A stretch of DNA of 64,000 nt from Isurus oxyrinchus (taxonomy: Eukaryota), in the NCBI GenBank assembly GCA_026770705.1, contig JANJGN010000385.1, positions 62,001 to 126,000 of the forward strand, written 5' to 3'. The stretch's first letter is position 1. Every line of letters begins with the position of its first letter. The translations under genes and the position numbers were made by a program. Shown one piece after another: positions 4,301 to 59,995 of the stretch. The notes below the pieces were generated by a model, which had not been told where the DNA came from, ran no database searches, and worked only from the letters and a program-made list of their open reading frames with translations.

Positions 4301-7300
4301 GCTCTTTCCCGTCACTGTGTCTTCAAAGGTTTCCTGAGCAGTCAGTACACTGCGATTTCAACCCTCTCTGATGCTGCGTCTCTGTTGTGGTCTGACCAAA
4401 GCGTCGAGGGTCGTCTCATGTCATGTAGCTCGATCTCAGGCTGTTCACCACGTCATACCTGTACTGAATCTTGCTGCCAGAATGTTTGGCCACCACTGAT
4501 CACCATGTTGTGTTTTTATAATGATATAAAGGCACCAGCCACTGATACGGAATTGGGTAAATACATTGTGGGTTCAGTTATTTAGAACAGGGACATGAGA
4601 ACAGATATACAAGGATAGAAAGCTGGGAGACACCTGCAGCCAAACTGTGTGAGCTGTGTTCTGCTCACAGGCCAAAGAGAAACTTGGACTGGATGGTGTT
4701 ACCATCCCAGCTGATGTTACTACTGGGCAAGTCAGATCCCAGGGTGGAGCTCAGCTTGATAGGTCCTAACTTTTATTTTTTATTTAGGAATGTGGAGTGC
4801 GGCTACTGAACAGAGTCACAGGAGTCATCTGATGAACGTCTAACAAAAGAATAAAACATTTATTAAACTAGGAAAGACAAACTATATGACATTACTCCTT
4901 CACCGAGACCTATACCTTTACAGATACATAAGTAGAACACAAATTACGATAACTATCTTATATTCTCATGTTCACACTAAGTACACAGTCCGTGTAAACC
5001 AATAGACGACCTGTGGTCAGGGACACAACATTCTGAAGCAAGTGGCAGAGCCCACTTGAAACAAATTCTATGTCTCATCTGTCCCCAGACGCTTGTGACA
5101 CTGTGAGCCAACCAGTCTCACTGAAAAGCTTCTTTCATATGAGAGTTTCCAATCTCCACTCTCCAAGAACTCTCTTTGGAATCTCCTCCAACATGACACT
5201 TTCACTCAGACACCTTCCACAAGGGTCCACTTTCACTATTTCAAACTCTCCTTCCCATGTTCCTGTCCCCTGGATCGCCACGTGCATTCAGCCTTCCTTC
5301 CACGCCCTGTCTCTCCAATGCTCAGCCGTGTCAATGGAACACCATGGCTTCACATGGCCGTAGTAATGAGTCACCAACCTGTGGTGTCTCCTAGGATCTT
5401 CTGGCTTCTCACAAGCCTATTTTGCTTTAGGTCTGTGTCCTGCTGCTTCTTCCTTTAAGCTTGAAGCCTTCTTCTGCTCCTCATTCTTAACTTCACTTAA
5501 CAGGGCCTTTTCCAGATTTGACTAGAAGGTTTTCTTGGGCCCTTTCTCCTGTTCCACTCGATGGTTTTGGCTTCTTCTTTACTTTGGGACTGACTATCTG
5601 TCCCAATCCTTTGCTGCTTCTCCTGGCAACTCCTTTCAACAGAACTGAAAGTACTTTTCTGTTTTTCTCTGTCTCTGTGGGTCCTTCCCTCTGGATCACT
5701 GTTGCTAGGCAACAGCACAGTTTCTTACACCTTGTATTTGTTTTGACTTCCCTTCAACAGTCATAAAACCTCAATGAAATGCTGGCTTCTTTGTAACTCA
5801 AGTTCCCCCTTTTCTCAACACCCAAATACAGAAATACAAACTAAACTTGAACTTAAAGATAGACCTTTTGCCTAACACACACAAATACACATAGAACTTA
5901 CTTAAGCGAACACCAGTTCCTAAAAATCACATGACACACTTCCCCTCGAGTGATGTCATGCTGCTGTCCCTGAAAGGCATATTACAAAAGTGTTATCACT
6001 TGGCAGGTGATGTGTGCCAGGCAGACCAAGTCCATGAGAGAAAGGTGGTCACACTATCATAATGATTTTGCAATTTGTATTTATTATGAGATGTGTGCAC
6101 TTAATTCAGAAGCAATAACTCCACCAATACCTTCAGAGATTTAAAACAATAAATTAACATATTTGTCATCAAAATAAAGGATTTCAAGCACATACATAAC
6201 TACAAGACTGCTATCATAACTCCTAAAATTCCTAATTAACCTGACTCCCAGTTACAGTCCCTTTAAGGCAACAGACCAAAAATAGATGTTAGATTTAAAA
6301 CAAAATCAGCAAGTTAACCCAATGCCCCGGACAGTGGAATTCCAAATGCATTGTCCCCAACTTCAGTTCTGTTGGAGAGCAGACTTCTGCACAAACAGGG
6401 TCCTGAGGACCATGAACCAATGTAGAATGAACTTTTCCGCTTTTGTGTCCAGGATTCTCTTCCATCTGGTGTGATACCTTGTGGAGTTCATTGTGTGTCC
6501 TGTAGATGGTCCACACTGCAGCCACTGTGCCCCAGTGATGGAGGGGGTGGATATCGAGTCTAGTGGATCAACAAAACATCCAGAGTTAAATATTGATATT
6601 TCTCTCCCCAGTTGGATTGTCACAAGAGTGGAAAGGTGACACTCCACGAGAGGTGACAGCGCAGGAAGGTTCGTGTGTACAGATTCCATGTCATTACAGT
6701 TATCCATCAGATTTGGTAAAGAAACCACAGGTCGGAATCTGGAAAATGAGAAGATACATACAGAACAAATGGTCTAAATGGTCTATAGCCTTTCACTCCA
6801 AGGGTCACAGTCGCGAGTTATCACAGTTCCACCATCGGACCCGGCTGTCTGGAGACCTGAAAGATGGCGACTGTTCCCTGATTATAAACAACATCAGACG
6901 GGAAGATGCAGGATCTTATTTTTTCACGATAAAATTTGGCAATGGTCCGAGACATAACGTTTCCCCTGAAACCCAGCTTCACGTTTCTGGTAAGTGCTGT
7001 GTTATAATTACTCACCAATTCACATCCAACACTCAATGGGAAATAATAGTGTTTGATTTGCTTGTTTTTTGGCCGTGTTAACCAGCGTCACTATTTTTAA
7101 TGATTTGTCTATTTCTGCTCCCAGATCCATGAGCTTATTGTGTGTGATTGAATCCACATCATAGCTGTAACGTAAACCGAGCTGAGGGGTGATGACACCT
7201 CCCCCCTGAGTGAAGTGTCTCCTCCCCACTACACCTTCCACCCCTCACACTGTCCGTGTAAACCCCCGTCCCATCTCCAGCCTCTCTTTCCCCTCCAAAG

Positions 7301-10300
7301 TCCTTGAACGTGTTTCCATCTCCCGAATCCGGTTCCATCTTTCCCGGAACTCCATGTTTGAATCCCTCCAATCAGGTTCCCACCCCAGCCACTGTGCTGA
7401 AACAGCTCTTATCAAGGTCACAAATGGCATCCTGTGTGACTGTGACAAAGGTCAACTTTCCCTCCTCGTCCTTCTCGATCTGTCTGCAGCCTTTGACACG
7501 CTCGACCACACCATCCTCCTCCAACCCCTCTCCACTGTCGTCCAGCTGGGTGGGACTGCTCTCCCCTGGCTCCATTCTTATCCATCTCATCGTAGCCAGA
7601 GAATCACTTGCAATGGCTTTGCAGCATCATCTGAACAGTATTAGTTTTCACCTGTCCACTGAGGATCCCCAGCTCTACCTCACCACCACCTCTCTTGACT
7701 CCTCCACTGCTGCTAAATTATCAGGCTGCTTATCCGACATCCAGTACTGGATGGGCAGAAATTCCCTCCAATTAAATATTGGAAAGACTGAAGCCATTGT
7801 CTTCATTCCCCGATCCAAACTCTGTTCCCTCGCTACCAACTCCATTCCTCTCCCTGGCAGCTCTCTGAGATTGAAGCCAATCTGTTCACAGCTTTGTTGT
7901 CCCATTTGATCCTGAGATGAGCTTCCGGCCTCATATCTGCGCCCTCACTAACACCGTCTATTTCCACCTCCATAACGTCGTACGACTTCACCCTGTCTCA
8001 GCTCATCTGCTGCTGAAACCCTCATCCACGCCTTCATTACCTCCAGACTCGACTGTTCCAACACATGCTCTACACTCCATAAACTTGAGGCCATCCAAAA
8101 CTGCTGACCACGTCCTTACTCACACCAAGTCCCGTTCCCTTATCACCCGCTCTGCTCGATGACCGAGACTGGCTCCTGGTCAAGCAAAGTCTCAATGTCC
8201 AAATTTTTGAATATTTTTCCTCCCTATTACAGTAATCTCCTCCTTTATCTTCATCCACGGCAACATTCCCTATCGCAGGAGCCTCCTCCAGTCCCTACAA
8301 CCCTCTCTATCTCAGGAGCCTCCTCCAGTCCCTACAACCCTCCCTATCTCAGGAGCCTCCTCCAGTCCCTACAACCCTCCCTATCTCAGGAGACTCCTCC
8401 AGTCTCTACAACCCTCCTATCTCAGTACTCTCTTCCAATCCCGAAAACCATTCCTATCACTGCAAACTCCTCCGGACCCAACACCCCTCCCTATCTCTTT
8501 AACCTCCTCAAGCCCCGATAACCCTCGCGATATTTGTAGCCTCCTCCAGTCCTAACAACCTCCACTATCTCTGCAAACTCCTCCAGACCGAATACCTCTC
8601 CTATCTCTGTAAGCTGGTCCATCTCTTACAACCCTTCATATTTCTGTAACCTCCTCCAGCCCACTACAACCCTCCCTATCTCTGTAACCTCCTCCAGTCC
8701 CTAAGAGTTTCCTTCATCTCTGTAACTCCTCCAGCCATTATAACCCTCCCTATCTCTGTAGCCTCCCTCAGCCCCAGCCACACTCCATATCTATGTAACC
8801 TCGTCCTGCCCCTACAACCCTCCCTATCTCTGTAACCCCATCCTGCCCCAAAAACTCCCCCATCTCTGTAAACTCCTCCAGTCCCTGCAACCTTCCCTAC
8901 CTCTGGAACCTCCACCAGCCTTTCCAACCCTCCCTACCTCTGCAATCCGTCCAGCCCCTACAACTCTTCCTATCCCTGTAAACTCCTCCTGCCCCTAAAA
9001 CCCTCTCTGCCCTTGCAGCCTCCTCCAGTCCCTACACGTTCCCCATCTCCATAAACTCCTCAAATCCCTATAGCCCTCCCTATCTCTGCAACCTCCTCCA
9101 GGTCCTACCACCCTCCCTATCTGCGTAATGTCCTCCAGTATCTACAGCCCTCCCTATCTCTGTTACCTCCTCCAGCCCCCACAAACCTCCCTATCAGTGT
9201 AACCTCCTCCAGCCCCAGATGGAAGGTGGGTCGAGCGGGTCAGTCACTTGCATGTTTATTCTGCAGCTTTAATATTTTAAGAAGGTAAGAATGTAGGAAC
9301 ATAAGAAATAGGGACAGGAGCAGGCCATTCGGCCCCTCGAGCCTGCTCTCACTGATCTGGTTGTGGCCTTAACTCCATTTTCCTGCCTGTCCCCCAAACC
9401 CTTGACTCCCTTGTCGATCAAAAACCTGCCTCACTCAGCCTTGAGTCTATTCAATGGCCCAGACTCCACTGCTCTCTGGGGAAGAGAATTCCACAGGCTA
9501 GCGCCCCTCTGAGAGAGGAAATTCCTCCTCATCTCAGTCTTAGATGGGAGAGCCCTCATTCCGAAACTGTGCTCCCTGGTTCTAGATTCCCCCACGAGGG
9601 GGAAACATCCTCCCAGCATCCACCCTGTCAAGCCCCCTCGGAATCGGATATGTTTCAATAAGGTCACCCCTCATTCTTCTAAACTCCAATGGATACAGGC
9701 CCAACCTGCTCAACATTTCCTCACAGGACAAACCCTTTAATCCCAGGAATCAGCCCAGTGAACCTCCTCTGAACTGCCTCCAATGCAACTCTATCCCTCC
9801 CTAAGTAAGGAGACCAGAACTGTACACACTGCTCCTGATACAATCTCACCAACGCCCTGTGCAGCTGCTGCAAGACTTCCCTCCTTTTATACCCCATCCC
9901 TTTGCAATAAAGGCCAACATTCCACTTGCCTTCCTCATTCCGTGGTGTTCCTGAATGCTGACTTTCTGTGATTCATGTACAAGGACACCCAGATCCCTCT
10001 GTACTGCATTCTGCAGCCTGTCTCCATTTAAATAATATCCTGTTTTTCTATTCTTCCTGCCAAAATAATTTGTTGCCATTCTCCTCAGTATTGACCATCC
10101 CCCCAATTCAGCCTCATCTGTAAATTTTGAGTCTAGTGGATCCACAAACCATCCAGAGTTAAATATTGAGATTTCTCTCCCCAGATAAACCCTCACAAGA
10201 GTGGAAAGGTGACAGTCCACGAGAGGTGACAGCACAGGAAGGTTCGTGTGTACAGATTCCATGTCATTACAGTTATCCATTGTGTCCGGAAAACCAACCG

Positions 10301-13300
10301 CGAGGTGGAGTCTGGTTTAATAATGAGAAACAGATTCCCTGGGCTCCCATTGCCTTTCACTCCAAGGATCACAGTCACGAGTTACCACGGTTCCACCATC
10401 GGACCCGGCTGTCTGGAGACCTGAAAGATGGCGACTGTTCCCTGATTATAAACAACATCAGACGGGAAGATGCAGGAACTTATATTTTCAGAATAGAATT
10501 TGACAATGGTCCGGGCCATAACTATTACCCTGTAACCCAGCTTCACGTTTCTGGTAAGTGCTGTGTTATAATTACTCAACAATTCACATTCAACACTCAA
10601 TGGGAAATAACACAAACTGTGACGTTTACATATTAACACAAAACACAGCTAATTATAACACACTGTCTGATTCTCGATAACCTGGTGATAGCTTCCAGTT
10701 CAGTCCTAAAACAACCTCTAATACTCACTTTAATATCAGTGGTTAAATGTATTGACTGTGTCCATCAATGTTATCAGGTTATCCACTTACATCAATCTCC
10801 CTAATCCTGTTTAAAATTCTTACATATCAACAAAAGAAAGATTTGCATTTCTATAGCGCCTTTCACCACCTTTTGACGTCGCAAATGGATTCACAACCAT
10901 TGAAATAATTCTTGAAATGTAGCCCTTGTTGTAATATAGGAAACACAGCAGCCAATTTGTGCACAGGAAGCTCCCAGAAACAGCAATGTGATCAATAACC
11001 TGATCGTCTGCTTTAAATGCCGGTTCAGTGATTGGTTCAAATGGATTCTCTCCTGCTGGGAACTGGATAGAATTTAAATCTGGCAGATTTCGGAGAAAGT
11101 AACAAGCCAGTGTGTCAGGAACTGTGAGCTGATCCCCCACCCTCACCCGGGATTGTCAATTCAATTGTCTCAAAGTGGAAGTGAATTCATCTGAGTGACT
11201 GAAACTCCACTAAGTCTGAAAATAGGAAAGTCTCTCCTGATCGTTGTAATCTCTCAGTTCTGATATCATCCTTGTAAAAGTGCTTTTTCTTGTGGGACTG
11301 TGATTTCTATTTGAACTGATGCTTCACGTTATATTTCTCTAAAAGGATCCATTCTCTGTCTGTTAGATTTCACAGATAAACCCATGATATTCCCTGCTGA
11401 AATTATTGCAGGGAAGCGTGTGGATGTAAGCTGCACCTTCAACACAACGTGCAATGGAACAGCAGCACCTGTCTTAACCTGGGACACTCCCACTGACGTA
11501 CCTGGATCAGTCTCAAACACTGTAACTCAGCATGGTGTCACTCTGACCTATACTTCTGTTCTGACCCTGATCTCATCACTCAAACACCACGGACACACTC
11601 TAAGCTGCAGAGTGAGATATCCATCTGTTTCATCGGAGCGGACCCTCGTATTAACTGTACAAGGTAAGTACTGAAACCCTTGATTCTATATTAGCTGTAA
11701 TAGGTTACAATGTGCAGAGCAAGATCCCACAAACATCACTGGGTTGAAGACAAAACAGGTCCTTTTTTATTAGTGATATTGACCAGGGAGAGCTCTTCCT
11801 GTATTGAGCCTTGGGATTGTTTATGCCTACCTGATAGGGCAGAGGGGGCCAAGGTTGAACTTAAAAGACAATATAGGATAATATAAATATTGTCTTCATT
11901 GATGTCAAAGATTTTGGGGGTGATGTAGTATAAAAGTTTAATATTAACAATGTAAATAGATAGTATTTATCATCAGTTACTCAAGGTTACATGAGAATAG
12001 AACACGGAGAGAGATAGTTCTATAGATACCTAGGTACATAGAAACTAGGAGCACGATTAGGACATTCAGCCCTTCAAGCCTTCTCCGCCATTCAATATGA
12101 TCAAGGCTGACCCTCTATCTCAAAGCCTTATTCCCGCTTTCTCTCCGTACCCTTTGATGCCCCTAATATCAAAATATTTATCAGTTTCTTTCTTGAATAC
12201 ACTCAGTGACCCGGCCTCCACAGCCTCTGTGATGGAGAATTCCACAGATTGACCACCCTCTGAGTGAAGAAATGTTTCCCTATCTCAGTCCAAAATGGCC
12301 TGCCCTGTATCCTGAGATTGTCGCCCTTGGTTTTAGACTCCCCAACCAGGGGATGCATCCTCCCTCCATCCAGTCTGTCTATCTCTGTTAGAATTTCTTA
12401 CGTTTATTCAGGTCTCCTCTCATTCTTCTAAACTCTAGTGAATACAGACCCAGTCGTAGCAATTCTCCTCATACGACAGTCCTGCCGCCCCTGGTATCAG
12501 CCTAGAGAACCTTCTCTGCACTCTCTCGAAGGCAAGTCTATCCTTTTTTAGGGAGGGAGACCAAAACGGCACGTAGTACCCCATGTGCAGTCTCACCAAG
12601 ACCTTGTATAACTGCAGTGAGACATCCCTACTCCTGAACACAAATCCTCTTGCAATGAAGGCCAACATACCATTTGCCTTCCGAATTACTTGCTGCACCT
12701 GCCTGTTTACTTTCATTGGCTAGTGCACAAGGACACCCAGATCCCTTTATACATCCACATTTCCCATTATATCACCATTTAAATAATACTCTGCCTTTCT
12801 GTTTTTCACACCAAAGCCTACAATGTCACATTCAACCACATCATCTGCCATGTGTTTGCCCACACACACAACTTGTCTAAATCGCCTTGAAGCCTCTTTG
12901 CATCCTCCTCACAGCTCACACCCTTACCCAGCGTTGTGTCATCAGAAAACCTGGAAATATTGCACTTGGCTCCTTCACCCAAGTCATTTAAATATATCGT
13001 GAATAGTTAGGTCCCAAGCACGGATCGCTGTGGTACACCACTAGTCACCGCCTGCCACTCAGATAAAGACTAATTTATTCTGACCCTCTGTTTCCTGTCT
13101 GTCGACCAATTCTCAATCCATGCCAGTAAATAACCCGCAATCCCATGGGCTTTAATGTTGCGCACTAGCCTCATGTAGGACCTTATCAAAAGCCTTCTTG
13201 AAATCTAAAAACACCACATCCACTGGTTATCCCTTATCTATTCCACAAGTTACATCCTCAAAATCTCCAGTAGATTAGTTAAGCATGATTTTCCTTTCAT

Positions 13301-44669: not shown

Positions 44670-47600
44670 ATGGGAAGCTCCCAGATGAAATGGCGACTTG
44701 TCTTGTTCACTCTGACTTTGCTGCTCTCCCTGCAGCTGAGTCACTTCTTCTCCTTGTCAAGGGTAAGCTAAGAGATGTCCCTCTGGGTGAGGTGTTTCTT
44801 GCACATGAGTCTACGTCTACCACCCAGATAGACTGGTCACTTCCGCAGTTTGATATTATTATGTTCGTGCCTTTAATATTGTCGCCCTCTATGAATTTAA
44901 CATCATTTCCTTCTGTCGTTTCCCCTGAAATTCTCATTCTTGTTTTCAATCCCTCCTCAGCCACTCCCTATCTCTGTAACCTCCACCAGGCCTTACAACC
45001 CTCCCTATCTCTGTAACCTCCTCCAGCCCCTACAACCCTCCCTATCTCTGTAACCTCCTCCAGCCGCTACAACCCTCCCTATATCTGTAACCTCCTCCAG
45101 CCCCTACACCAATCCCTATCTCTGTAACTTCCTCCAGCCCCTACAACTGTCCCTATCTCCGTAACCTCCTCCAGCCCCTACAACCCTCCCTATCTCTGTA
45201 ACCTCCTCCAGCCCCTATAAACCTCCCTATCTCTGTAACCTCCTCCAGCCCCTACAACCCTACCTATCTCTGTAACCTCCCCCAGGCCCCACAACCCTCA
45301 TGATCACTGTAACCTCCTCTAGACCCTACAACCCTCCCTATCTCTGTAACCTGCTCCAGACCCTACAACCCTCCCTATCTCTGTAACCTCCTCCAGGCCC
45401 TACAACCCTTCCTATCTCTGTAACCTCCTCCAGGCCCCACGACCCTCAGAATCACTGTAACCTCCTCCAGCCCCTACAATGCTCATGAACTCTATAACGT
45501 CCTCTCCACACTATAACTCTCCCTATCTCTGTAACCTACTGTGGCCCCTACAACAGTATCTATTTTGGTAACCTCCTCCAGCCTCTACAACCCTCCCTAC
45601 CTCTGTAACCTCCTCCAGCCCCCACAACCCCCCCATCTCTTTAACCTCCTACAGCCCCTACTCACCTCCCTATCTCTGTAACCTCCTACAGCCCCTACAA
45701 CCTTCCCTATCTCTGTCACCTCCTACAGCCTCTAGAACCCTCCCTATCTCTGTTACCTCCTACAGCCTCTACAACCCTCCCTATCTCTGTAACCTCCTCC
45801 AGCCGGAACAACCCTACCTAAATCTCTGGTCTGAGTCTCACTCCAGGGAATTCAGTCCCATAACATCGGTCAACACTCCGTGCTGAGGGAGTGCTGGACT
45901 GTCAGAGGGTCAGTAGTGTGGAAGTGTTGCACTATTGGAGGGACAGTACTGAGTGAGTGCTATACTGTCGGAGGTCAGTACTGAGGAAGTGCTGCATTGT
46001 TACAGGGTCAGTACTGTGGAAGTGTTGCACTGTCGGAGGGTCAGTACTGAGGTAGCGCTGCACTGACGGAGGGACAATACTGTGGGAGTGCAGCACTATC
46101 GAAGGGTTAGTACTGAGGGAGTGCTGCAGTGTCAAAGGGTTAGTACTGAGGGAGCACAACAATGTTGAATGAGACATTAAACTGAGTCCCCCGTCTGCCC
46201 TCTCGGGCGGGTGTGAAAGATCCCACAGCCACTATTTGGAGGAAGAGCAGGGGGTGTTCTCCCCGTGTCCTGGGACCAATATTTATCCCTCACCCAACAT
46301 CACCAAAAACAGATGATCTAGGCCATGATCACATTGCTATTTGTGGGATCTTGCTGTGCACAAATCAGCTGCCACATTTCCTACAGTGTGAGTGCACTTC
46401 AAAAACATCCTTCAGTGGCTGTGAAATGCTTTGGGATGTGGTGAAAGGCGTTAGAGAAATGCAAGTCTGTCCTCCTCCCCCTCTCTCTCCTGTACCTCTC
46501 TCTCTCTCTCTCCCTCTCCCTCAATCCTCCTCTCACTTTCTCCCTGATAAATTCTTTCTTTTTGCAGGTTGACACTGCTTTAGGTTCTTCGACGATTGAG
46601 AAATCTGTGGATTCCCCGGACACGGTAGGTGGAAATTCATTCCTTATTTTAAGGTTTCTCCCTGCTCGTTTCTTCCACAGAAAGTTTTCTGATTTCAAGC
46701 TGATTTCAGTGGCAGTCTGTCTCGGTTATACTCAGGAGGCAGGTTTGAAATCGAGCCCCCCCAGCCCCCACTTTTTTTGCAAAGCTGGGAAGAGGCAATT
46801 CCAAGGAAGTGAACATATCCCCACAGGAATTTTAAATGTAACCCACGCCGGGAATAGTGAGAGGGAGACTGATCCAGCCTGGGAGTAGGTTAAAGAGAGG
46901 CTGGGAGTCGAGAGTCGGAGAGAGGGATGGAATGGGGGAGGGAGGGATTGGAAGAGAGAGACAGAGAGTGGGACGGGGAGGGGTGAAAGGGAAAGAAAAT
47001 AGGTGGGAGAGAGTGACAGAGGGAGAAATTAAAGAGATGCAGAGTGAGGGAAAGTGAAAAGGGAAGAGTGATTGTCCAAGAGAGAGAAATTAACAGGAAA
47101 GGGAGAGTTACAGAGTGAGCGAAAGTTACAAAAATAGTGTGAGAGAGAGGGAGAGATACAGAGTGGGAGAATGAGACAGGGGAGAGAGAGGGAGAGAGAC
47201 AGGAAAAGGGAGAGAGGAGAGAAAGATTGGGAGAGAGGGCAATTGAGCGGAAGAGTAGGAGAGAGAGAGACAGGGAGAGGAGGAGTGGAAGAGAGGAAGA
47301 GAGAGAGAGATATGGAGCAGGAGAACACCTCCTCCGGTCCCGATGTTCCTCCAAAATCTCTGACATTACTGCATCTCCCGGGTCCCCCTGATTCCCATCG
47401 CTCCACCATTGGTGGCCGTGCCTTCAGCTGCCTGGGGCCCTGAGCTCCGGAATACCCTCCCTTAACCTCTCTGCCTCTCTCTCTCTCTCTCCTTTAAGAC
47501 GCTCCTTAAAAACTGACATCTTTGACCAAGCTTTTGGTCACCTATCCCTAATATCTCCATATGTGACTCAGTGTTAGACTTCTCTCTGATTTACGCTCCG

Positions 47601-49136
47601 GTAATGTGGGCTGGGACATTTTGCAATGTCAGAGGCGCTGTGTAAATGCAAGTTGTGAGTGTTATGTGGAAGGGAGACCCCAGGCGGCAGTCAGTGCCAG
47701 AGACTGGAGTCATTGTGTGCAGACCGTATCTAATCTCTCCGAATGCACAATCGGTTTGACTGTCAGCCAAAGCATTTTTGATATTTGATCCTTCTACCTG
47801 TTTATAACCAGGCCTACATCAAACACCGAGAGGCTGGTTAATCAACAGACACCTTAGAGGATCGAGTGAAAGACAAAGAGGACTTGCATTTCTCTATAAA
47901 AACAAAGAAAACTGCAGATGCTGGAAAGCCAAAACAAAAACAGAATTACCTGAAAAAACTCAGCAGGTCTGGCAGCATCGGCGGAGAAGAAAAGAGTTGA
48001 CGTTTCGAGTCCTCAGAAGGGTCATGAGGACTCGAAACGTCAACTCTTGCATTTCTCTAGCGCCTTCCAACACTTCAGGACGTCCCAAACTGTTTCGCAG
48101 ACAATCAAGTGCTTTTTTTCTTTCATGTGAGGTCACTGATGTACTGTGGGAAAAGAATCAGCCATTGGCGCACAGTAAGATCCCACAGACAGCAGCATGA
48201 TAATGACCAGCGCGCTCCCAGTACTTGCACTGCAAGTGTCAGTTCAGGGTGTCTGCTCGATTCTCTGCAACTCTCAGCTCTGAGTTAAAAGGACCACCAG
48301 GCATAATTGAGAAATTACCGAGCTGTCGGAGGGTCAGTACCAGCGGGGGGGCAGGAGAGTCGGAGGGTCAGTACTGAGGGGGTGCTGCATTGTCAGACAG
48401 TCAGTCTTGGAGTGCTGCATTGTCAGAGGGTCAGTACCGGCGGGGGACTGCACAGTCGGAGGGTCAGTACTGAGGGGTGCTGCATTGTCAGACGGTCAGT
48501 ACTGAGGGAGTGCTGCACAGTCGGAGGGTCAGTACTGAGGGGGTGCTGCACTGTTGAATGCGCTGTCTTTCAGATGAGATGTTAAACTGAGACAACATCT
48601 GCCCTCTCAGATGGATGTAGAGGATTCCATGGCCACAATTTAAATGAAGTGCGTCAGGAGTTGGGGGTATGTGTGGAGGGGGTGGTGGGGGGTGGATGGG
48701 ATGCAGTTATGTCTGCTTTCCTGGGGCAAACATTTATCCCTCAACTGACATTGGTAAAAAACTGAAAATCGGGGCCATTATCACATTTCTGTTTGTGGGA
48801 TCTTGCTGTGCGTGAATTGCCTGCTGCGTTTCCTACATTACAGCGGTGAGCTCACTTCAGAAAAAGTCCTTCCTTCAGCTGTGGAACACTTTGGGCCATC
48901 CTGAGGAGGGGAAAGGCGCTATAGAAATGCGCCATCCTCCTTCCAATGACGCGCCTGATTGAAATGATGCCTTCTTTCTTTCCGGAATGTTCTCACCTAT
49001 TGTCCTCCTGCTTTTCCAGGGCTCCTTGCTGCAGCGCCAGAAGAGAATGGACAGACAGCAGCTCTGCATATTCTGCTGTAGCTGCTGTAATTGGAGAGAA
49101 CCAAATGAGACTTGTGGTCTCTGCTGTAGATATTAG
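44670..49136 (+). CDS. HAMP: Hepcidin-like prepropeptide, 88 aa, exons 44670-44762, 46568-46624, 49020-49136
   Basis: MGSSQMKWRLVLFTLTLLLSLQLSHFFSLSR | VDTALGSSTIEKSVDSPDT | GSLLQRQKR-MDRQQLCIFCCSCCNWREPNETCGLCCRY*. Has a signal peptide, furin site RQKR, the hepcidin 8-Cys pattern C-x2-CC-x-CC-xn-C-x2-CC, and two phase-0 GT-AG introns. AATAAA at 49778-49783. Confidence 0.93.
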
Positions 49137-52100
49137 ACCCTGGCCTCATTCACGCAAGGTCATCCTGCACCATGCCACAGCCTCTCCCCTCCTTATCTAC
49201 TGCTTAGCAATCTATTTCACACAGGCCCTGTTCATTAATTCCAACTGAAACTTTACCTGCGTTTTACAGCAGGGAAAGAAGCCATTCGGCCCATCTGTTC
49301 CATGCTGGAGTTTCTGCTCCACACGAGTCTCCGCCCACCCCTTCTCCATCTCACCCCATCACCATATCCTTCTATTCATTTCTCCCTCGTGTGTTTATCC
49401 AGCTTCCCCTTAAATACATCGACACTATTCACCTCACGTGACTGTGTTTGTGTCTGTCTTTATGAGCGTGTGTGTGTGTGTGTGTGTGTGACTGTCAATA
49501 TGTGTGTGTCAATGTGAATGAGTGAGTGTGTCAGTGTGTCTGTGTGGGTGTGGGTGTGTGAGTGTGCAAGTGAATGTGTGAGGAATCTTATGACTAAGTC
49601 ATTTGAATGGATGTTACTGGGGTTAATGATAGTTAAAATTCAGAGAGATGTAAAGCGGGCCCCTGATTTTGCTGCTTTATGCTCCCGGGCACAGATTCAC
49701 CCCGACAATGTGTTCATGATTCACCATTATCTTGTCGGGACTTTAATTGTAAAGATTATGATTTGTGAAAAAAAATGAATAAACAACTTTTGTCTTCACA
49801 AAGTGTCTGGCTTGGTATTTCAGGCTACTTGTCTCTCCCTCACCCTCCCCCCCCCCACCATGCCCCCCACACCAGGGAACAATTGTCCCCCCTTCCTCTG
49901 AAGTTCTGGGTAAAGATCAGCTTTGTTCAATGCAAGCTGTTCCGACATCGAGAACGTTGTTACAAATATCTCCCAAAGGGCACACGCCATGATAGCCCAC
50001 TTTCAACAGATTTTACCAGTTGACCAGGTTGAAAACCTTTTCATAAACCACAACGTAGGTGTTCAATTCTTGCTGCTGTTTGCTTAATGTTCTCATAACT
50101 GCTATAACCTCTCTAGTTCCACTACATAACAACACCAACGATGGTTGTGATTATTGGGGGTCAATCATCTCAGTTCCAGGACATCACTGCAGGAGTTACT
50201 CAGGGTAGTGTCCTAGGCTCAAACATCTTCAACTGCTTCATCAATGACCTTCCTTCCATCATAAGGTCAGAAGTGGGGATGTTTGCTGATGTTTGCACAA
50301 TGTTCAGCACCATTCACGGCTCCTCAGATACTGAAGCAAGTTATGTCCAAATGCAGCAAGACCTGGACAACATCCAGGTTTGGGCTGACAGGTGACAAGT
50401 AACATTCATGCCACACAAGTACCAGGCAATGACCAGCTCCAACAAGAGAGAATCTAATTGAAGATGCAGAAAATTTGGATTTATGTTCAAGAGCCAGCCA
50501 GGACCAGCAGCTAGGGCGCCAAAGCGTACACATCCTTACGTGAAAACTTAAAAACCTGTACAAAGGGCTCAGTTGGAAATTTGCAATGAGGAAATGGGAG
50601 ACACACACACAAGGACACTGGGTGACTCAATCAAGAAATGGGGAAGGTTATTTCACACCGTCCGATGGCCTTGAACCACATCCAGTCAGCCCCCGGAAAC
50701 CTTTTGTATTGAACAAACATAGATTCTTTGCTGTCTCAAAAGGACAATAGCCAGTCTCTGCCCTGTAATTACTGTACAAGAACACAATTATTAGCCCACC
50801 GGAGGGTCGTTGTGCTGTGGCCTTTGTCTAACTAATACCATTACCTTGTAACTGAGAGTAAAAATATATAAACTGTGCTCATTTGAACCTCGGTGGAGAA
50901 GCGCCTGGACTGCCCAGCGTTTGCTCCCCACATGCCTAATAAAGGAACCACTTGAATATTGCATCTGGAGTCCGAGTGTTGAAATTTTGTACCAGAATAT
51001 TCCACAGACCATTCATAACCATCGCCCCTTGACATTCAATGGCATTACCATCAATGAATCCCCCAATATCAACATCCTGGGAGTTACCATTGAGCAGAAA
51101 CTGAACTGGACCAGCCATATAAACACTATGGCTGCAAGAGCAGGTCAGAGGCTGGGAACCCTGCAGACAGTAACTCACCTCCTGACTCCCCAAATCCTGT
51201 CCACCATCTACAACGCACAAGTCAGGAGTGTGATGGAATACTCTCCACATGCCTGGATGAGCACAGCTCCAACAACACTCAAGAAGCTCGACACCATCCA
51301 GGACAAAGCAGCCCGATTGATTGGCTCCCCTTCCACAGAGCTAGATAGATTCTTGATTAACAAGGGGGTGAAAGGTCATTGGGGGTAGGCAGGAATGTGA
51401 GGTTGAGGTGACAATCAGATCAGCCATGATCTTACTGAATGGCTGAGCAGGTTCGAGGGACTGAGTGACCTACTCCTGATCCTAACTCAGATATCCAGAT
51501 GTTCTCAAAGGCAATTGGGGATGGGCAACAAATACTGGCCTAGTCAGCGACACCAACATCCCTGAAATGAATAAGAAAAAAATGTATCAATCAATTAAAT
51601 TTATTGATTAATCGAATTGAAATTCCTCCAGCTGCCGTGGTGGGATTTGAACCCGTGCCTTCAAAGCATTCACCTGGGCCTCTGGATCACTGGCCTAGTG
51701 CCATTCCCATTGTGCGACTGTCTGCTATCATCATGGCTCTTTCACATCGATGTGGAAGTCCTGATAACAGAAGCATTGGACGAGGTACAGAAAGGTGACA
51801 AATCAGGAGCTCCATTGCTCAATATGAACGGATAATAAAGATAAATGAACATAAACCTTCCAGTCGCTAATTAGGGAGTCACTGTGGAGCCCATGAGTCC
51901 CTCGCAGCGCTATTGTAACCTTCTGGATCCCCAGTAGGGGACTCGGGGTGCAGCTGTGTCTTCCTCATCATTTGGAAAAGCCGGAATTGTTCGGGTGCCC
52001 CTTCAAACAGGCCGAAGATGCAGTGGGTGATGTCTCCCACAGGCCCTGGGAGACCTCCCCTGCCAATTTGTTTTGTAGCTTATTCTTCAACTGCGACATT

Positions 52101-54691: not shown

Positions 54692-57600
54692 CTAGAGAAC
54701 ACACAGAAAGAAATCATCACTGACTCTCCGCTTTCAATCTCTCACTCTGGCTGAACAATCAAGCTTCATATCACTGCAACATTTGCTGTAATATTGACCC
54801 ATCCACTGGGATTCAATGTGGAATGAATGTTTTCATTGTAAACACTCTAAGAGTGGACAATCGGAACTTTCCCCTTAGCGTGGAACATTGGTGAGAATGG
54901 ATCATTGTGCTGTTGGACTCCCTGTCCAATGTTTCTCTCCATCGCTGTGTACAGGATTGTGCTGTAGAAAATTCTGGAAACGTTTAGTGCAGGGTAGAAA
55001 TCCATCTCGGACGCGTGTGCGAATCGGGCAAGATCGAGATGGACTCCCCCATGGACTTACACCCCCCGCTTAATAAACAGGTCCAATCTTTATCCAGAGA
55101 GAGGGGAGAATGTGGAACTCGCTCCCACAGGGAGTGGTCGAGGTGAACAGTATCGATGTATTTAAGGGGCAGGAGGGTCGGTAACCAGAGGGACACAGAT
55201 TGACGAACCGGAGGGGGAGATGAGGAGAATTTGTTTTGACAGAGTGAGTTGTTGTGATCTGGAAGGTTCTGCCTGAAAGGGCGGTGGAAGCAGATTCAAT
55301 AGGAACTTTCAAAAGGGAAATTGGATAAACACTTGAAGGAGGAAGATGGGGGCAAAGTGGAGTGGTGGTTAGTGGATCTGATGGGATAGAACATTGAAAG
55401 ACCTGGCACAGGCTCAATGGGCTGAATGGCCTCCTCCTGTGCTGTATCATTCTCCGCTTCCATGATCTCTCCCCCAGTCAGTAACCACTCCAGATCCCTC
55501 TTGAAGGTGACAGAGAGACAGCAACCACCACACCCACTGACAGCACATTCCCGAGGATCCCTACTCTCTGGGAAAAGATGAACTCCCCAACATCCAGCCT
55601 ATTCCTGCTTCCCAGAGAGTGTAAACCCTTCAGGGAGGCACTGAGGAAGTTTTCAATAAAATGAATTATCAAATCTATCATTTGAGAAATAATTTAATTC
55701 TGATGAACTCACAGCTTGTGTAGCAAACTGGGAAGTGGAGTTGCTGGGAAAGCTGGGAAACACAAGGATGAAGGGCTACAATGCCACCACTGGTGGGAGG
55801 CTGTAACTACAGCGTGACGTTTACATAGGCAGTCATCATTATAAACAGGGGCATTGCACATAATGGGAATTATGTGCACGGAAATAGTGAGAACATTATG
55901 TAAGCTTTTCACCAGCAGGAATTCTCTTCCTAAACCTCTCCAACTCTCTCTTACTCTCAGATACACAAAGAAAATCACACAGAATCAGATAAGGAAGAAT
56001 TAGGTTGGTGATTCGTCAAAGGGTTAGGTTTCAGGAAGCTTCTTAAAAGGAGAGAGAGAGTTGGAGACGCAGAGAGTATCTGTGAGAGCCTCTATGCATC
56101 TGAGTGTCTGTAATAGTAATTTCCATATTCTTCCATAAATATGAATGGGAACACAAATCCCAGAATTCAGGCCAACTCTCCAGTGCAGTACTGAGGGAGG
56201 TCAGGTAACCCATGAGGGAGTGAGTGTTAGTGTTTGTGTGTGAGTGTGTCTTTGTGTGTGGTCATATATGTGTGTCTGCACGTGTCTATTTAGGTGTGTA
56301 TGTTCGATGGTGTTTGTGTAGTGTTCAAATCTGAGAGAGATGTTGAAGTCTGTGTAACTCACGTTCCACACTGATGGTTATGAACCCATCCACTGCTCCA
56401 TGTTCATTCTCTGCCACACACTGATAGTCTCCAGTGTCCCTGGATGTAACATGAGGAATCACCAACCACAGCTCATTGTTGGAACTTGTTCTGTTCATTT
56501 GGACATTCAGATGTCATGGCAGGAATCAAGAAGCCCGTTCACAGGATTATCAACAGAAAGTGAACAACAATTTATACTTAATGGGAAGAGAGTGCTGATT
56601 GGTTGGCAAGTGGACTCTGATAGGTGGAGGTGTTGCCATGGAGAATGGTGTGTGCGAGATGTAAAGTTTAGACAGCTTGTCTCTTCATTCAGCAATAATC
56701 AAATAAAGATCAATTAAATTCTATCGACTTTGAAGCACTTAGAGAGGCCTTAGAATGTGGACACTGAGAACGGGCTGCACTGTCAGAGGGTCTGCGCTGA
56801 GGGAGTGCTGATGTAGAATGAAAGGTGTATGTAATTACCTTGCACTGTTAGTACGAGGGTCCGCTCCGATGAAACAGATGGATATCTCACTCGGCAGCTG
56901 AGAGTGTGTCCGTGGTGTTTGAGTGATGGGATCAGGGTCAGAACAGAAGTATAGGTCAGAGTGACACCATGCTGAGTTACAGTGTTTGAGACTGATCCAG
57001 GTACGTCAGTGGGAGTGTCCCAGGTTAAGACAGGTGCTGCTGTTCCATTGCACGTTGTGTTGAAGGTGCAGCTTACATCCACACGCTTTCCTGCAATAAT
57101 TTCAGCAGGGAATATCATGGGTTTATCTGTGAAATCTAACAGACAGAGAATGGATCCTTTTAGACAAATATAACGTGAAGCATCAGTTCAAATAGAAATC
57201 ACAGTCCCACAAGAGAAAGCACTTTTACAAGGATGATATCAGAACTGAGAGGTTACAATGATCAGGAAAGATTTTCTTGCTCTTTGGCAGTAGTGTTTCT
57301 GTCTCTCAGCTTAATACACGTTCACTCCGAGACATGTGAATTGAGAATACTGGATGAGAGAAGAGGCTCAGTCCAGAGATTGGAGTTAAAAGCAGAATAC
57401 TGCGGATGCTGGAAATCTGAAACAAAAACAAAAATTGCTGGAAAGACTCAGCAGGTCTGACAGTATCAGTGGAGAGGAAGACAGGGTTAACGTTTCAAGT
57501 CTGTATGACTCTTCATCAGACCAGAGGTTTGAGTTCACTGGCTTCTCATTTCCTCAGTGATCTGGGTGATTTATCACCTTGTGGTTTGTTGGATCTTGCT

Positions 57601-59995
57601 GTGCACAAACTGACTGCTGTGTTTTACATCTGTGACTACAATTCAGGAATAATTTCATTGGCTGTGAAGGGATTTGGATCCTCCTGAGGTGGTAAATTGC
57701 GCTGCAGAAATGCACATCTTTCTTTTATCGATACGTGAGACTTTTAAACAGGACAGGAGAGATTGATGGGAGTGGATAACCTGATAATACAGTTAATGCT
57801 TTTCATCATTGATATTAAAGTGAGTATTAGAGGTTGCTTTAGGACTGAACTGGAAGCTATCACCAGGTTATTGAGAATCAGATAGCAAGTTATAATAAGC
57901 TGTGTTTTGTGTTAATATGTAAACGTCACAGTTTGTGTTATTTCCCATTGAGTGTTGAATGTGAATTGTTGAGTAATTATAACACAGCACTTACCAGAAA
58001 CGTGAAGCTGGGTTACAGGATAGTAGCTTTAACTATTCCTGCTGTCAAATTCTATTCTGAAAAAAATAAGGTCCTGCATCTTTCCGTCTGATGTTGTTTA
58101 TAATCAGGGAACAGTCGCCATTTTTCAGGTCTCCAGACAGCCGGGTACGATGGCGGAATCTTTGATCCCTGTGACTGTGACCCTCGGAGTGAAAGGCTAT
58201 AGACCATTTAGGCTGTAGGGTTCCCATCTATTCCTGTCAACCAGATTCCGACACGTGATCTCCCTACGAAATGTGATGATTAACTGTCATGACATGGAAT
58301 CTGTACACAGGAACCTTCCTGCGCTGCCACCTCTCGTGGAGTGTCGCCTTTCCACTCTTGTGACAGTCCAAGTGGGGAGAGAAATATCAATATTTAACTC
58401 TGGAAGGTTTGTAGATCCACTAGACTCGATATCCACCCCCTCCATCACTGGGGCACAGTGGCTGCAGTGTGGACCATCTACAGGACACACATGGAACTCC
58501 CCAAGGTTTCACAATGGATGGAAGAGAATCCTGGACACAGGAGTGGACAAGTTCATTCTACATTGGCTCATGGTCCTCAGGACCCTGTTTAGTGAAGCCA
58601 GTCTTCCACCCAACACAGTGTCTACAAGATACACAGAGAAACTGTGTAAACATCTCATCTCTCTAAACTGACTGGCTTGGCTTCGGTTTAACTTTCAGTA
58701 TTTTTAAATTTCCATATTGTGGTTGCTATGGTGAAACTGTGCAGGAAGAGTGAGGGCTGGACTCTCTGTCTATTCTCACTGCAGCTGTGATGTGGCCGTG
58801 GTGATTGTCAGTAAAATGAAACCCTCTGATCTCCTCCATCCCCGAGGTTTAGGGAGTGAATTCCAGAGCTCAGGCCCCAGGCAGCTGAAGGCACGGCCGC
58901 CAGTATTGGATTGATGGGAATCGGGGGATGGTCAAGAGGCCGGAATTGCAGTAACACAGAGATCTGGGAAGTTGTTTGGTTGAGTTGCAGGAGGTTTCAG
59001 AGATTAAGAGATAAGAATGATCTTTTACAAAGACTGTTAAACATAATTCTGTCTGAGCTGATGATGATATTACCTTGGGAAAGTGACAAGAGGAAGTAGA
59101 TTTCCCGATCATCGTCCACTCCCAGATATTCCATCCACTTCTCACTCTCAAGCTGTGAAAGAGAAAGGAGTTAATGAGACGTCACCTCTTGTCCGAATGC
59201 TCTCGAGAGATCAGAACTGCTTTTAGACAATGTCTTCACAGACTAATTTGATTCTCTGTGGGATGATAGGTGCTCTGCAGAGAGTTACAAGGCTTTAAGA
59301 AAGAAGAACATTTAAGGATTTGCATTTCTATAGCACCTTTCACCACCTCAAGACGCTCATGTTTTGAGATCTTGGTGAACTGTTAACCGTTTGTGTCCTG
59401 ACCCTGTGGTGATATTTCTGCTCAGAGGTGGACAGTCATTGACCAGGAGTTTCTCCTGTGGGTCAGTGGGTTTCACAGCCAAATTCAGGGGCTCTGAACA
59501 TTGTGGGATTCAAGACCCCATTCAGGGGACGTCTGCCCCACAGAGTAGACTGAAACTCCCCAGTGTCAGTACTGAGCAAGTGCTGCACTGTCGGATGGTC
59601 ATTACTGAGCAAGTGTTGTACTATTGTAAGGTCAGTACTGAGGGGGATCTCCACTGTTGGAGGGTCAGTACTGAGGGAGTGCTGCACTGTCAGAGGGACA
59701 TTTATCAGGGAGTGCTGCACTGTTGGAGGGTCAGTACTGAGGGAGTACTGCACTGTCAGAGGGACATTAATCAGGGAGTGCTGCACTGTTAGAGGATCAG
59801 TACTGAGGGAGTGCCGCACTGTTGAAGGGTCAGTATTAAGGTGCTGATTTAGAAGACAGGACAATGTGTTAGGAGCCCTCAGAACTTCCCCCGTGATTTC
59901 CAATCGATCCGTTACTTACCCAGGACCTGTCTGACTGCTTGCCTGGGGAGGAACTGCCCACACGCTCTGCTTGGGCTGAATGGGCCTCCTCCTGT
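54552..59995 (-). pseudogene. Siglec gene B: inverted paralog, activating type (leader-V-C2-C2-TM with Arg-short tail), disabled
   Basis: 5'UTR exon ~59995-59920; leader 59152-59074 (1 nt short); V 58371-57995 (acceptor AG>AC at 58372, TAA at 58282-58280 and 58031-58029, frameshifts); intact C2 57135-56839; 5'-truncated C2 ~56516-56363; intact TM/tail exon 54691-54552. Confidence 0.88.

Follow-up and report, generated by a model that had tools for sequence, protein, structure and literature searches.

Can a hepcidin whose N-terminus no longer has His3 and a hydrophobic residue at position 4 still act as an iron hormone? The question is raised by a small three-exon gene in a 64,000-nucleotide stretch of Isurus oxyrinchus DNA (contig JANJGN010000385.1, positions 62,001 to 126,000, forward strand), referred to here as the window and numbered from its first letter. 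The gene belongs to a multi-copy hepcidin (HAMP) family, is intact and transcribed, and is situated within a cluster of CD22/Siglec-like receptor genes. On comparison with known hepcidins it is probably a lineage-specific, diverged paralog that would be a poor ferroportin ligand or none, and not the main iron hormone of the animal, because Arg3 and Gln4 replace His3 and Phe/Leu4 in its mature peptide and because the same animal expresses a copy whose mature peptide begins with xSHLSIC.

The original prediction had assembled this gene from three short exons. The exons hold at the same coordinates, with GT..AG borders and phase 0 introns, and our translations agree with the earlier reading (Table 1). 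None of them had been assembled in the open reading frame (ORF) track, a reminder that small three-exon peptide genes can be missed. The predicted product has the layout of human hepcidin-25 (HAMP; PDB IDs 1m4f, 2kef, and 6wbv), with a signal-like start, a pro-region, a basic convertase site directly before a C-terminal mature peptide, and a match to PF06446. The signal-like core encoded by exon 1, LVLFTLTLLLSL, has a hydropathy peak of 2.7 at residues 10–19 (hydrophobic core residues 10–21). By analogy with known prohepcidin processing, the 88-residue prepropeptide would be secreted and cut after RQKR. When exon 3 was compared alone with Pfam PF06446 (Hepcidin), it scored 30.6 bits (E 4.3e-7; residues 5–37 on positions 24–52 of the 53-position profile), above the gathering cut-off of 27 bits, and the mature peptide carries Cys at positions 7, 10, 11, 13, 14, 23, 26, and 27, which is the eight-Cys hepcidin framework that had been claimed for it together with the RQKR site. 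The pattern C-x2-CC-x-CC-x(3-10)-C-x2-CC turns up a single time when all six frames of the 64-kb window are read, and in none of 30 shuffles. A phmmer search of the PDB returned human hepcidin as the sole match (E 0.98), a score kept weak by the shortness of the peptide; the match was used for alignment only, and in the alignment to 1m4f the string CIFCC..CC....CG.CC is identical, 11 of the 20 aligned residues are identical, and a four-residue gap in the human sequence falls in the loop.

Other searches added little to the family assignment. No second hepcidin copy was found in the window by tblastn with the three exons, and no second hepcidin exon by a short-motif scan for SHL[ST].C and the Cys pattern. 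Exon 3 (38 residues) had no match at E<=0.001 among 1.8 billion proteins, a blank that is uninformative for so short a query, and for region 18–57 of the frame 48963–49133 no protein of 31–100 residues sharing three five-residue words was present in the searched collection, distant hepcidins being beyond the reach of that method. The top score in the ESM Atlas (0.75) belonged to an unrelated plant cluster and is likewise uninformative. An AlphaFold2 model made from the single sequence without an alignment is helical, of low confidence, and uninformative, with a mean predicted local distance difference test (pLDDT) value of 65.6.

To follow the gene into transcripts, contigs of four public runs were placed on positions 44500–49400, namely X1 from organism A and X5, X7, and X8 from organism B. 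Both splice joints on which the predicted gene depends are found in X1, both with GT..AG borders: the joint 44762/46568 occurs in six contigs, and the joint 46624/49020 in nine, to which is added a tenth, deeper contig whose last exon 2 codon is changed from ACG to ATG. The X1 depth is 1.7e5–8.6e5 in exon bins compared with ~700 in unique intron bins, a difference of ~300-fold. Because of the spliced joints, this exon-to-intron ratio, and a run size of only 93 million letters of contigs, X1 is read as RNA sequencing and not as genomic DNA. Very high depth continues into the 3′-untranslated region (UTR) as far as 49400, where the compared region ends. Intron contigs of X1 at 44840–44984, 46343–46485, and 48687–49046 have no differences from the window, which suggests pre-mRNA of the window copy or of an identical copy. 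Contig depth, in general, ranks no copies and maps no RNA ends. A repeat-derived cassette exon in intron 2 is joined to exon 2 (46624/47812) and to exon 3 (47966/49020) with GT..AG borders, each joint in one X1 contig; this isoform is minor and, because the cassette introduces an in-frame stop, non-productive. In the runs from organism B nearly all coverage derives from repeats, and X5 shows a weak exon signal with one exon 2/3 joint at a depth of 24, too little to judge the long-loop form there.

The mature peptide differs from human hepcidin-25 at the N-terminus and in the hairpin loop, as well as in length and charge. In both peptides the first Cys is preceded by six residues, Cys occupy positions 7, 10, 11, 13, and 14 and are followed by C-x2-CC, and the core is CIFCC; the human Cys residues lie at 7, 10, 11, 13, 14, 19, 22, and 23 (PMC7915682), so that the Cys spacing of the window peptide is the same save for its 4 extra loop residues. 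The N-terminus MDRQQL, originally read from the translation, is confirmed and replaces the human DTHFPI, leaving the peptide without His3 or Phe4. The loop comprises 8 residues compared with 4 in the human peptide and contains an NET sequon, the length is 29 residues compared with 25, and the composition (3 Arg, 3 Asp/Glu, no His or Lys) gives a net charge of 0 and an isoelectric point (pI) of 5.9. The calculated mass is 3479 Da for the reduced 29-mer and ~3471 Da once four disulfides are formed. The active epitope of human hepcidin is formed by the first nine residues, chiefly His3, Phe4, Ile6, and Phe9 (PMC7915682). When the window peptide is set against an iron-hormone epitope defined as His3, Phe/Leu4, Ile/Leu6, and Phe/Trp9, it has Arg3 and Gln4 at the first two positions, with Leu6 and Phe9 retained. 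The 29-mer is expected to fold into the four-disulfide hepcidin hairpin with a tip loop twice as long as usual, where an N-glycan may be attached, and its binding to ferroportin would be lost or weakened. The Cu/Ni-binding motif, which requires a His at position 3, is absent from the window peptide.

The window gene is one expressed family member and not the sole hepcidin of the animal, because X1 contains a second type of mature peptide and more than two junction variants. One X1 contig runs along the window up to 49049, past the furin site, and from there encodes SHLSICMYCC in frame. The encoded peptide has six residues before its first Cys, including His3 and Leu4, which is the standard His3-type N-terminus. 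Past the cleavage site 10 of the first 15 nucleotides differ from the window, the changes in the five codons being all non-synonymous, and the pro-region part of the same contig matches the window at a 90% likeness threshold. At the junction of exons 1 and 2, X1 has four forms: TCAAGG/GTT (the form in the window), TCGAGG and TCGCGG (both synonymous), and a GTT>GGT change (Val>Gly). The variant positions are 44759–44761 and 46569 at this junction and 46623 at the end of exon 2, where ACG>ATG (Thr>Met) is carried by the deepest X1 contig and is present in run X5 of organism B too. These variants show that several near-identical copies or alleles are expressed; four junction forms correspond to more than two haplotypes and therefore to several transcribed loci, unless the sample pools individuals. 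The original prediction had called the gene a neofunctionalized paralog, or else a cartilaginous-fish hepcidin with a different ferroportin interface. The SHLSICMYCC contig and the four junction forms support the paralog, whereas neofunctionalization and an altered interface are hypotheses.

Mouse hepcidin-2 is an extra hepcidin copy that stands beside the standard one and is said to have no part in iron regulation. Like mouse hepcidin-2 and teleost Hamp2 (sea bass HSSPGGCRFCC..., PMC5665920), the window gene is an additional hepcidin without the standard N-terminus, present alongside a copy of the standard type, in contrast to the single human HAMP gene. With teleost Hamp1 (sea bass QSHLSLCRWCC..., PMC5665920) the window peptide shares family and framework, but it lacks the SHL motif and its loop has 8 residues compared with 5. 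The SHLSICMYCC paralog, on the other hand, closely resembles the sea bass Hamp1 start QSHLSLC (PMC5665920) and resembles the human DTHFPIC; the QSHLS start of the sea bass peptide and the human hepcidin-25 sequence (PMC7915682) had both been quoted correctly in the original prediction. For sea bass, regulation of ferroportin is reported for Hamp1 and not for Hamp2, the mature peptides being QSHLSLC... and HSSPGGC..., respectively (PMC5665920), and second hepcidin genes are stated not to be involved in iron regulation (Nemeth and Ganz review, PMC8235187). This teleost analogy, together with the position of second genes outside iron regulation, further favors a diverged paralog as the identity of the window gene. 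In lacking a QSH/DTH start and in coexisting with the SHLSIC copy in X1, the peptide resembles an antimicrobial-type, teleost Hamp2-like hepcidin; unlike teleost Hamp2, it is not cationic, and its loop is longer and may be glycosylated. Judged from the sequences, the window copy would almost certainly have originated independently of teleost Hamp2 and mouse hepcidin-2, because its pro-region still matches the standard-type transcript at the 90% threshold, and orthology with teleost Hamp2 is unlikely. The window gene would then correspond, in sharks and through a duplication of its own, to teleost Hamp2 or mouse hepcidin-2, and the standard His3-type copy would be the iron hormone. As for the role of the window copy itself, host defense or metal handling is our guess.

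Several observations weigh against a diverged paralog outside iron control. The standard-type copy is known from 30 letters of one contig only. X1 is classed as RNA by guess, although the joints and the 300:1 ratio argue for RNA, and contig depth sums close paralogs, so that the abundance is that of a near-identical transcript family and not provably that of the window copy. The 29-mer lacks the net positive charge of an antimicrobial-type hepcidin and, with its charge of 0 and pI of 5.9, is unlike a classical cationic peptide. Leu6, Cys7, Ile8, and Phe9 preserve 4 of the 9 epitope positions, which makes residual ferroportin binding possible. The proximal promoter also contains a GGCGCC hexamer of the BMP-responsive type, as in the iron-regulated human gene, although this is a consensus match only; in the human HAMP promoter GGCGCC constitutes both BRE1 and BRE2, which are BMP-responsive elements (PMC3879105). 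The hexamer occurs twice in 64 kb, the other occurrence (50515–50520) lying ~730 nucleotides beyond the poly(A) signal, and the chance of finding one in the proximal promoter is ~0.01 (two sites x 300-nucleotide window / 64 kb), before allowing for the several motifs tried. The retained epitope residues, the eight Cys, and this promoter element would all fit a peptide that is still an iron hormone, binding ferroportin by itself or jointly with its sister copies and governing iron export through a somewhat different N-terminal contact; the gene would in that case encode an ordinary, functional hepcidin whose sequence is specific to its lineage. Such a function is also consistent with the enormous transcript abundance, as for liver hepcidin, with the neutral charge, which argues against a classical membrane-active antimicrobial role, and with the position of the gene beside CD22/Siglec-type genes, like human HAMP. 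We consider an iron hormone unlikely here, though a serious contender, in view of the replacement of the epitope residues His3 and hydrophobic residue 4 (PMC7915682) by Arg and Gln, the expression of a standard SHLSIC-start transcript in the same run, and the teleost precedent that the copy without a QSH start does not regulate ferroportin (PMC5665920).

The window gene might instead be a transcribed but idle duplicate, one that arose recently as a by-product of segmental duplication in an array of Siglec and hepcidin genes and is still driven by the strong family promoter while its mature peptide drifts without selection. Its surroundings are built by duplication, as seen in an inverted, truncated Siglec copy with a split V-set exon (58393–57915) and in twin Ig and tail exons; its introns are full of satellites, and the non-productive cassette isoform is present. 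Yet the reading frame is intact, as are the start, the two pairs of splice sites, the furin site, and every one of the eight Cys, and the differences from the standard copy cluster in residues 1–5 of the mature peptide, with the adjoining pro-region matching at the 90% threshold. Selection acting on the mature peptide gives such a pattern more typically than uniform drift does, and we regard an idle duplicate as improbable. That there is no gene here at all, the three open stretches forming a chance array or the joints stemming from processed DNA copies, would draw on the guessed RNA label of X1, but it is extremely improbable: the PF06446 match lies above threshold, the Cys pattern is found only once in the window and in no shuffle, both joints occur in contigs, and the GT..AG borders are used exactly, with exons at ~300 times the intron depth in a run of 93 million letters, unlike genomic DNA. 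A bolder reading, which we consider a long shot, is that sharks co-amplified hepcidin with Siglec genes and that the neutral, long-loop, possibly N-glycosylated form circulates as a second hormone and acts on a target of its own. Cartilaginous fish have a second ferroportin paralog without the hepcidin-binding Cys326 (PMC8235187), and the target may be this paralog or a metal or microbial ligand. If true, the hepcidin system would have split early, at the base of the jawed vertebrates.

Cartilaginous fish are where hepcidin, and the ferroportin cysteine that it binds, first appear (PMC8235187), and the literature searched contains only passing mentions of shark or cartilaginous-fish hepcidin, with no characterization. 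In a study of nurse shark plasma, hepcidin was found without a whale shark ortholog among the proteins of that species, for which the paper gives no reason (PMC9207270); the supplement of that paper has no hepcidin entry. The locus described here presents a shark-type genome with more than one expressed hepcidin, one of them a very abundant form with an altered ferroportin-binding end and a doubled loop, and thus a natural experiment for telling which regions of the peptide iron control needs. Its practical value is modest until function is shown. The coordinates of the gene, its promoter motifs, and the neighboring exons are collected in Table 1.

Table 1. Features of the hepcidin gene and of the flanking Siglec-like genes in the 64-kb window (a slash marks the exon–intron border in donor sequences)
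Feature	Position	Strand	Remarks
GGCGCC hexamer	44451-44456	+	219 nucleotides upstream of ATG; consensus match only
TATA-like box TATAAG	44593-44598	+	72-77 nucleotides upstream of ATG
Exon 1, coding part	44670-44762	+	31 codons from ATG; donor AGG/GTAAGC; signal-peptide-like hydrophobic core, start of pro-region
Intron 1	44763-46567	+	1805 nucleotides, GT..AG, phase 0; mostly satellite DNA; acceptor TTTTTGCAG
Exon 2	46568-46624	+	19 codons of pro-region; donor ACG/GTAGGT
Intron 2	46625-49019	+	2395 nucleotides, GT..AG, phase 0; dispersed repeats, 33-bp satellite; acceptor TTTTCCAG
Minor cassette exon	47812-47966	+	155 nucleotides, in intron 2, repeat-derived; in-frame stop at codon 10
Exon 3, coding part	49020-49136	+	38 codons + TAG; pro-region end, furin site, mature peptide
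RQKR, R-x-K-R proprotein-convertase (furin) site	49035-49046	+	directly before mature peptide
Predicted mature peptide	49047-49133	+	29 residues, eight of them Cys; starts with MDRQQL; net charge 0, pI 5.9
Hairpin loop NWREPNET	49089-49112	+	between Cys14 and Cys23, 8 residues; enlarged
N-glycosylation sequon NET	49104-49112	+	within NWREPNET loop
3′ UTR	49137-49800	+	~660 nucleotides; GT-rich microsatellite 49440-49570; AATAAA 49778-49783
Upstream Siglec-like gene	6590-27390	+	
V-set exons	6590-7078, 10163-10633	+	match Ig_CD22 (PF24518)
C2-set/Ig exons	11315-11671, 17388-17930, 19515-19841, 20738-21109	+	
Twin tail exons	22694-23176, 25496-25972	+	93% identical
Downstream partial Siglec-like copy	56358-58393	-	inverted
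C2-set exon of inverted copy	57187-56831	-	97% protein identity to 11315-11671
V-set exon of inverted copy	58393-57915	-	split over three frames: 58393-58241, 58212-58060, 58064-57915

The promoter and the hepcidin exons are unique within the window according to repeat analysis. Transcription would start ~25–45 nucleotides downstream of TATAAG; the X1 bin 44500–44663 has a depth of ~1/6 of that of exon 1, which fits a start within that bin. The 3′ end of the transcript is provisionally placed from the sole downstream AATAAA, at 49778. No STAT site TTCNNNGAA is present within 1 kb upstream of the hepcidin gene. A CRE/C-EBP-like motif, TGACGCAA, occurs just once in the window, at 44387–44394, 283 nucleotides upstream of the ATG.

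On both sides the hepcidin gene is flanked by Siglec-like genes of the MAG/CD22 type. The two tandem V-set/Ig_CD22 exons of the upstream gene are 73% identical to each other, and the split V-set exon of the inverted downstream copy is a putative pseudogene or an assembly slip. The human order, USF2-HAMP-MAG-CD22, likewise places HAMP next to the Siglecs MAG and CD22; no USF2 was seen in the 64-kb window. By this comparison the locus fits an ancestral HAMP neighborhood that was probably amplified by segmental duplication. The Ig exon at 17388–17930 has a 94.5% identical twin at 16198–16470, beside runs of N.

The introns of the hepcidin gene share their satellites with other parts of the window. 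Intron 1 contains 23 copies of a 37-bp unit (44964–45820), which recurs inverted upstream at 41705–42290, and a 33-bp array at 45883–46155; the 33-bp unit is found in intron 2 as well (48323–48554) and near 38.7 kb (38685–38943). These arrays have a huge depth in all four runs, indicating genome-wide repeats that are transcribed too. Further upstream, a GA/GT-rich tandem array of 70/142-bp units (39569–40242; 9.5 copies, 91% matches) gives rise to a spurious ORF of 412 residues on the reverse strand.

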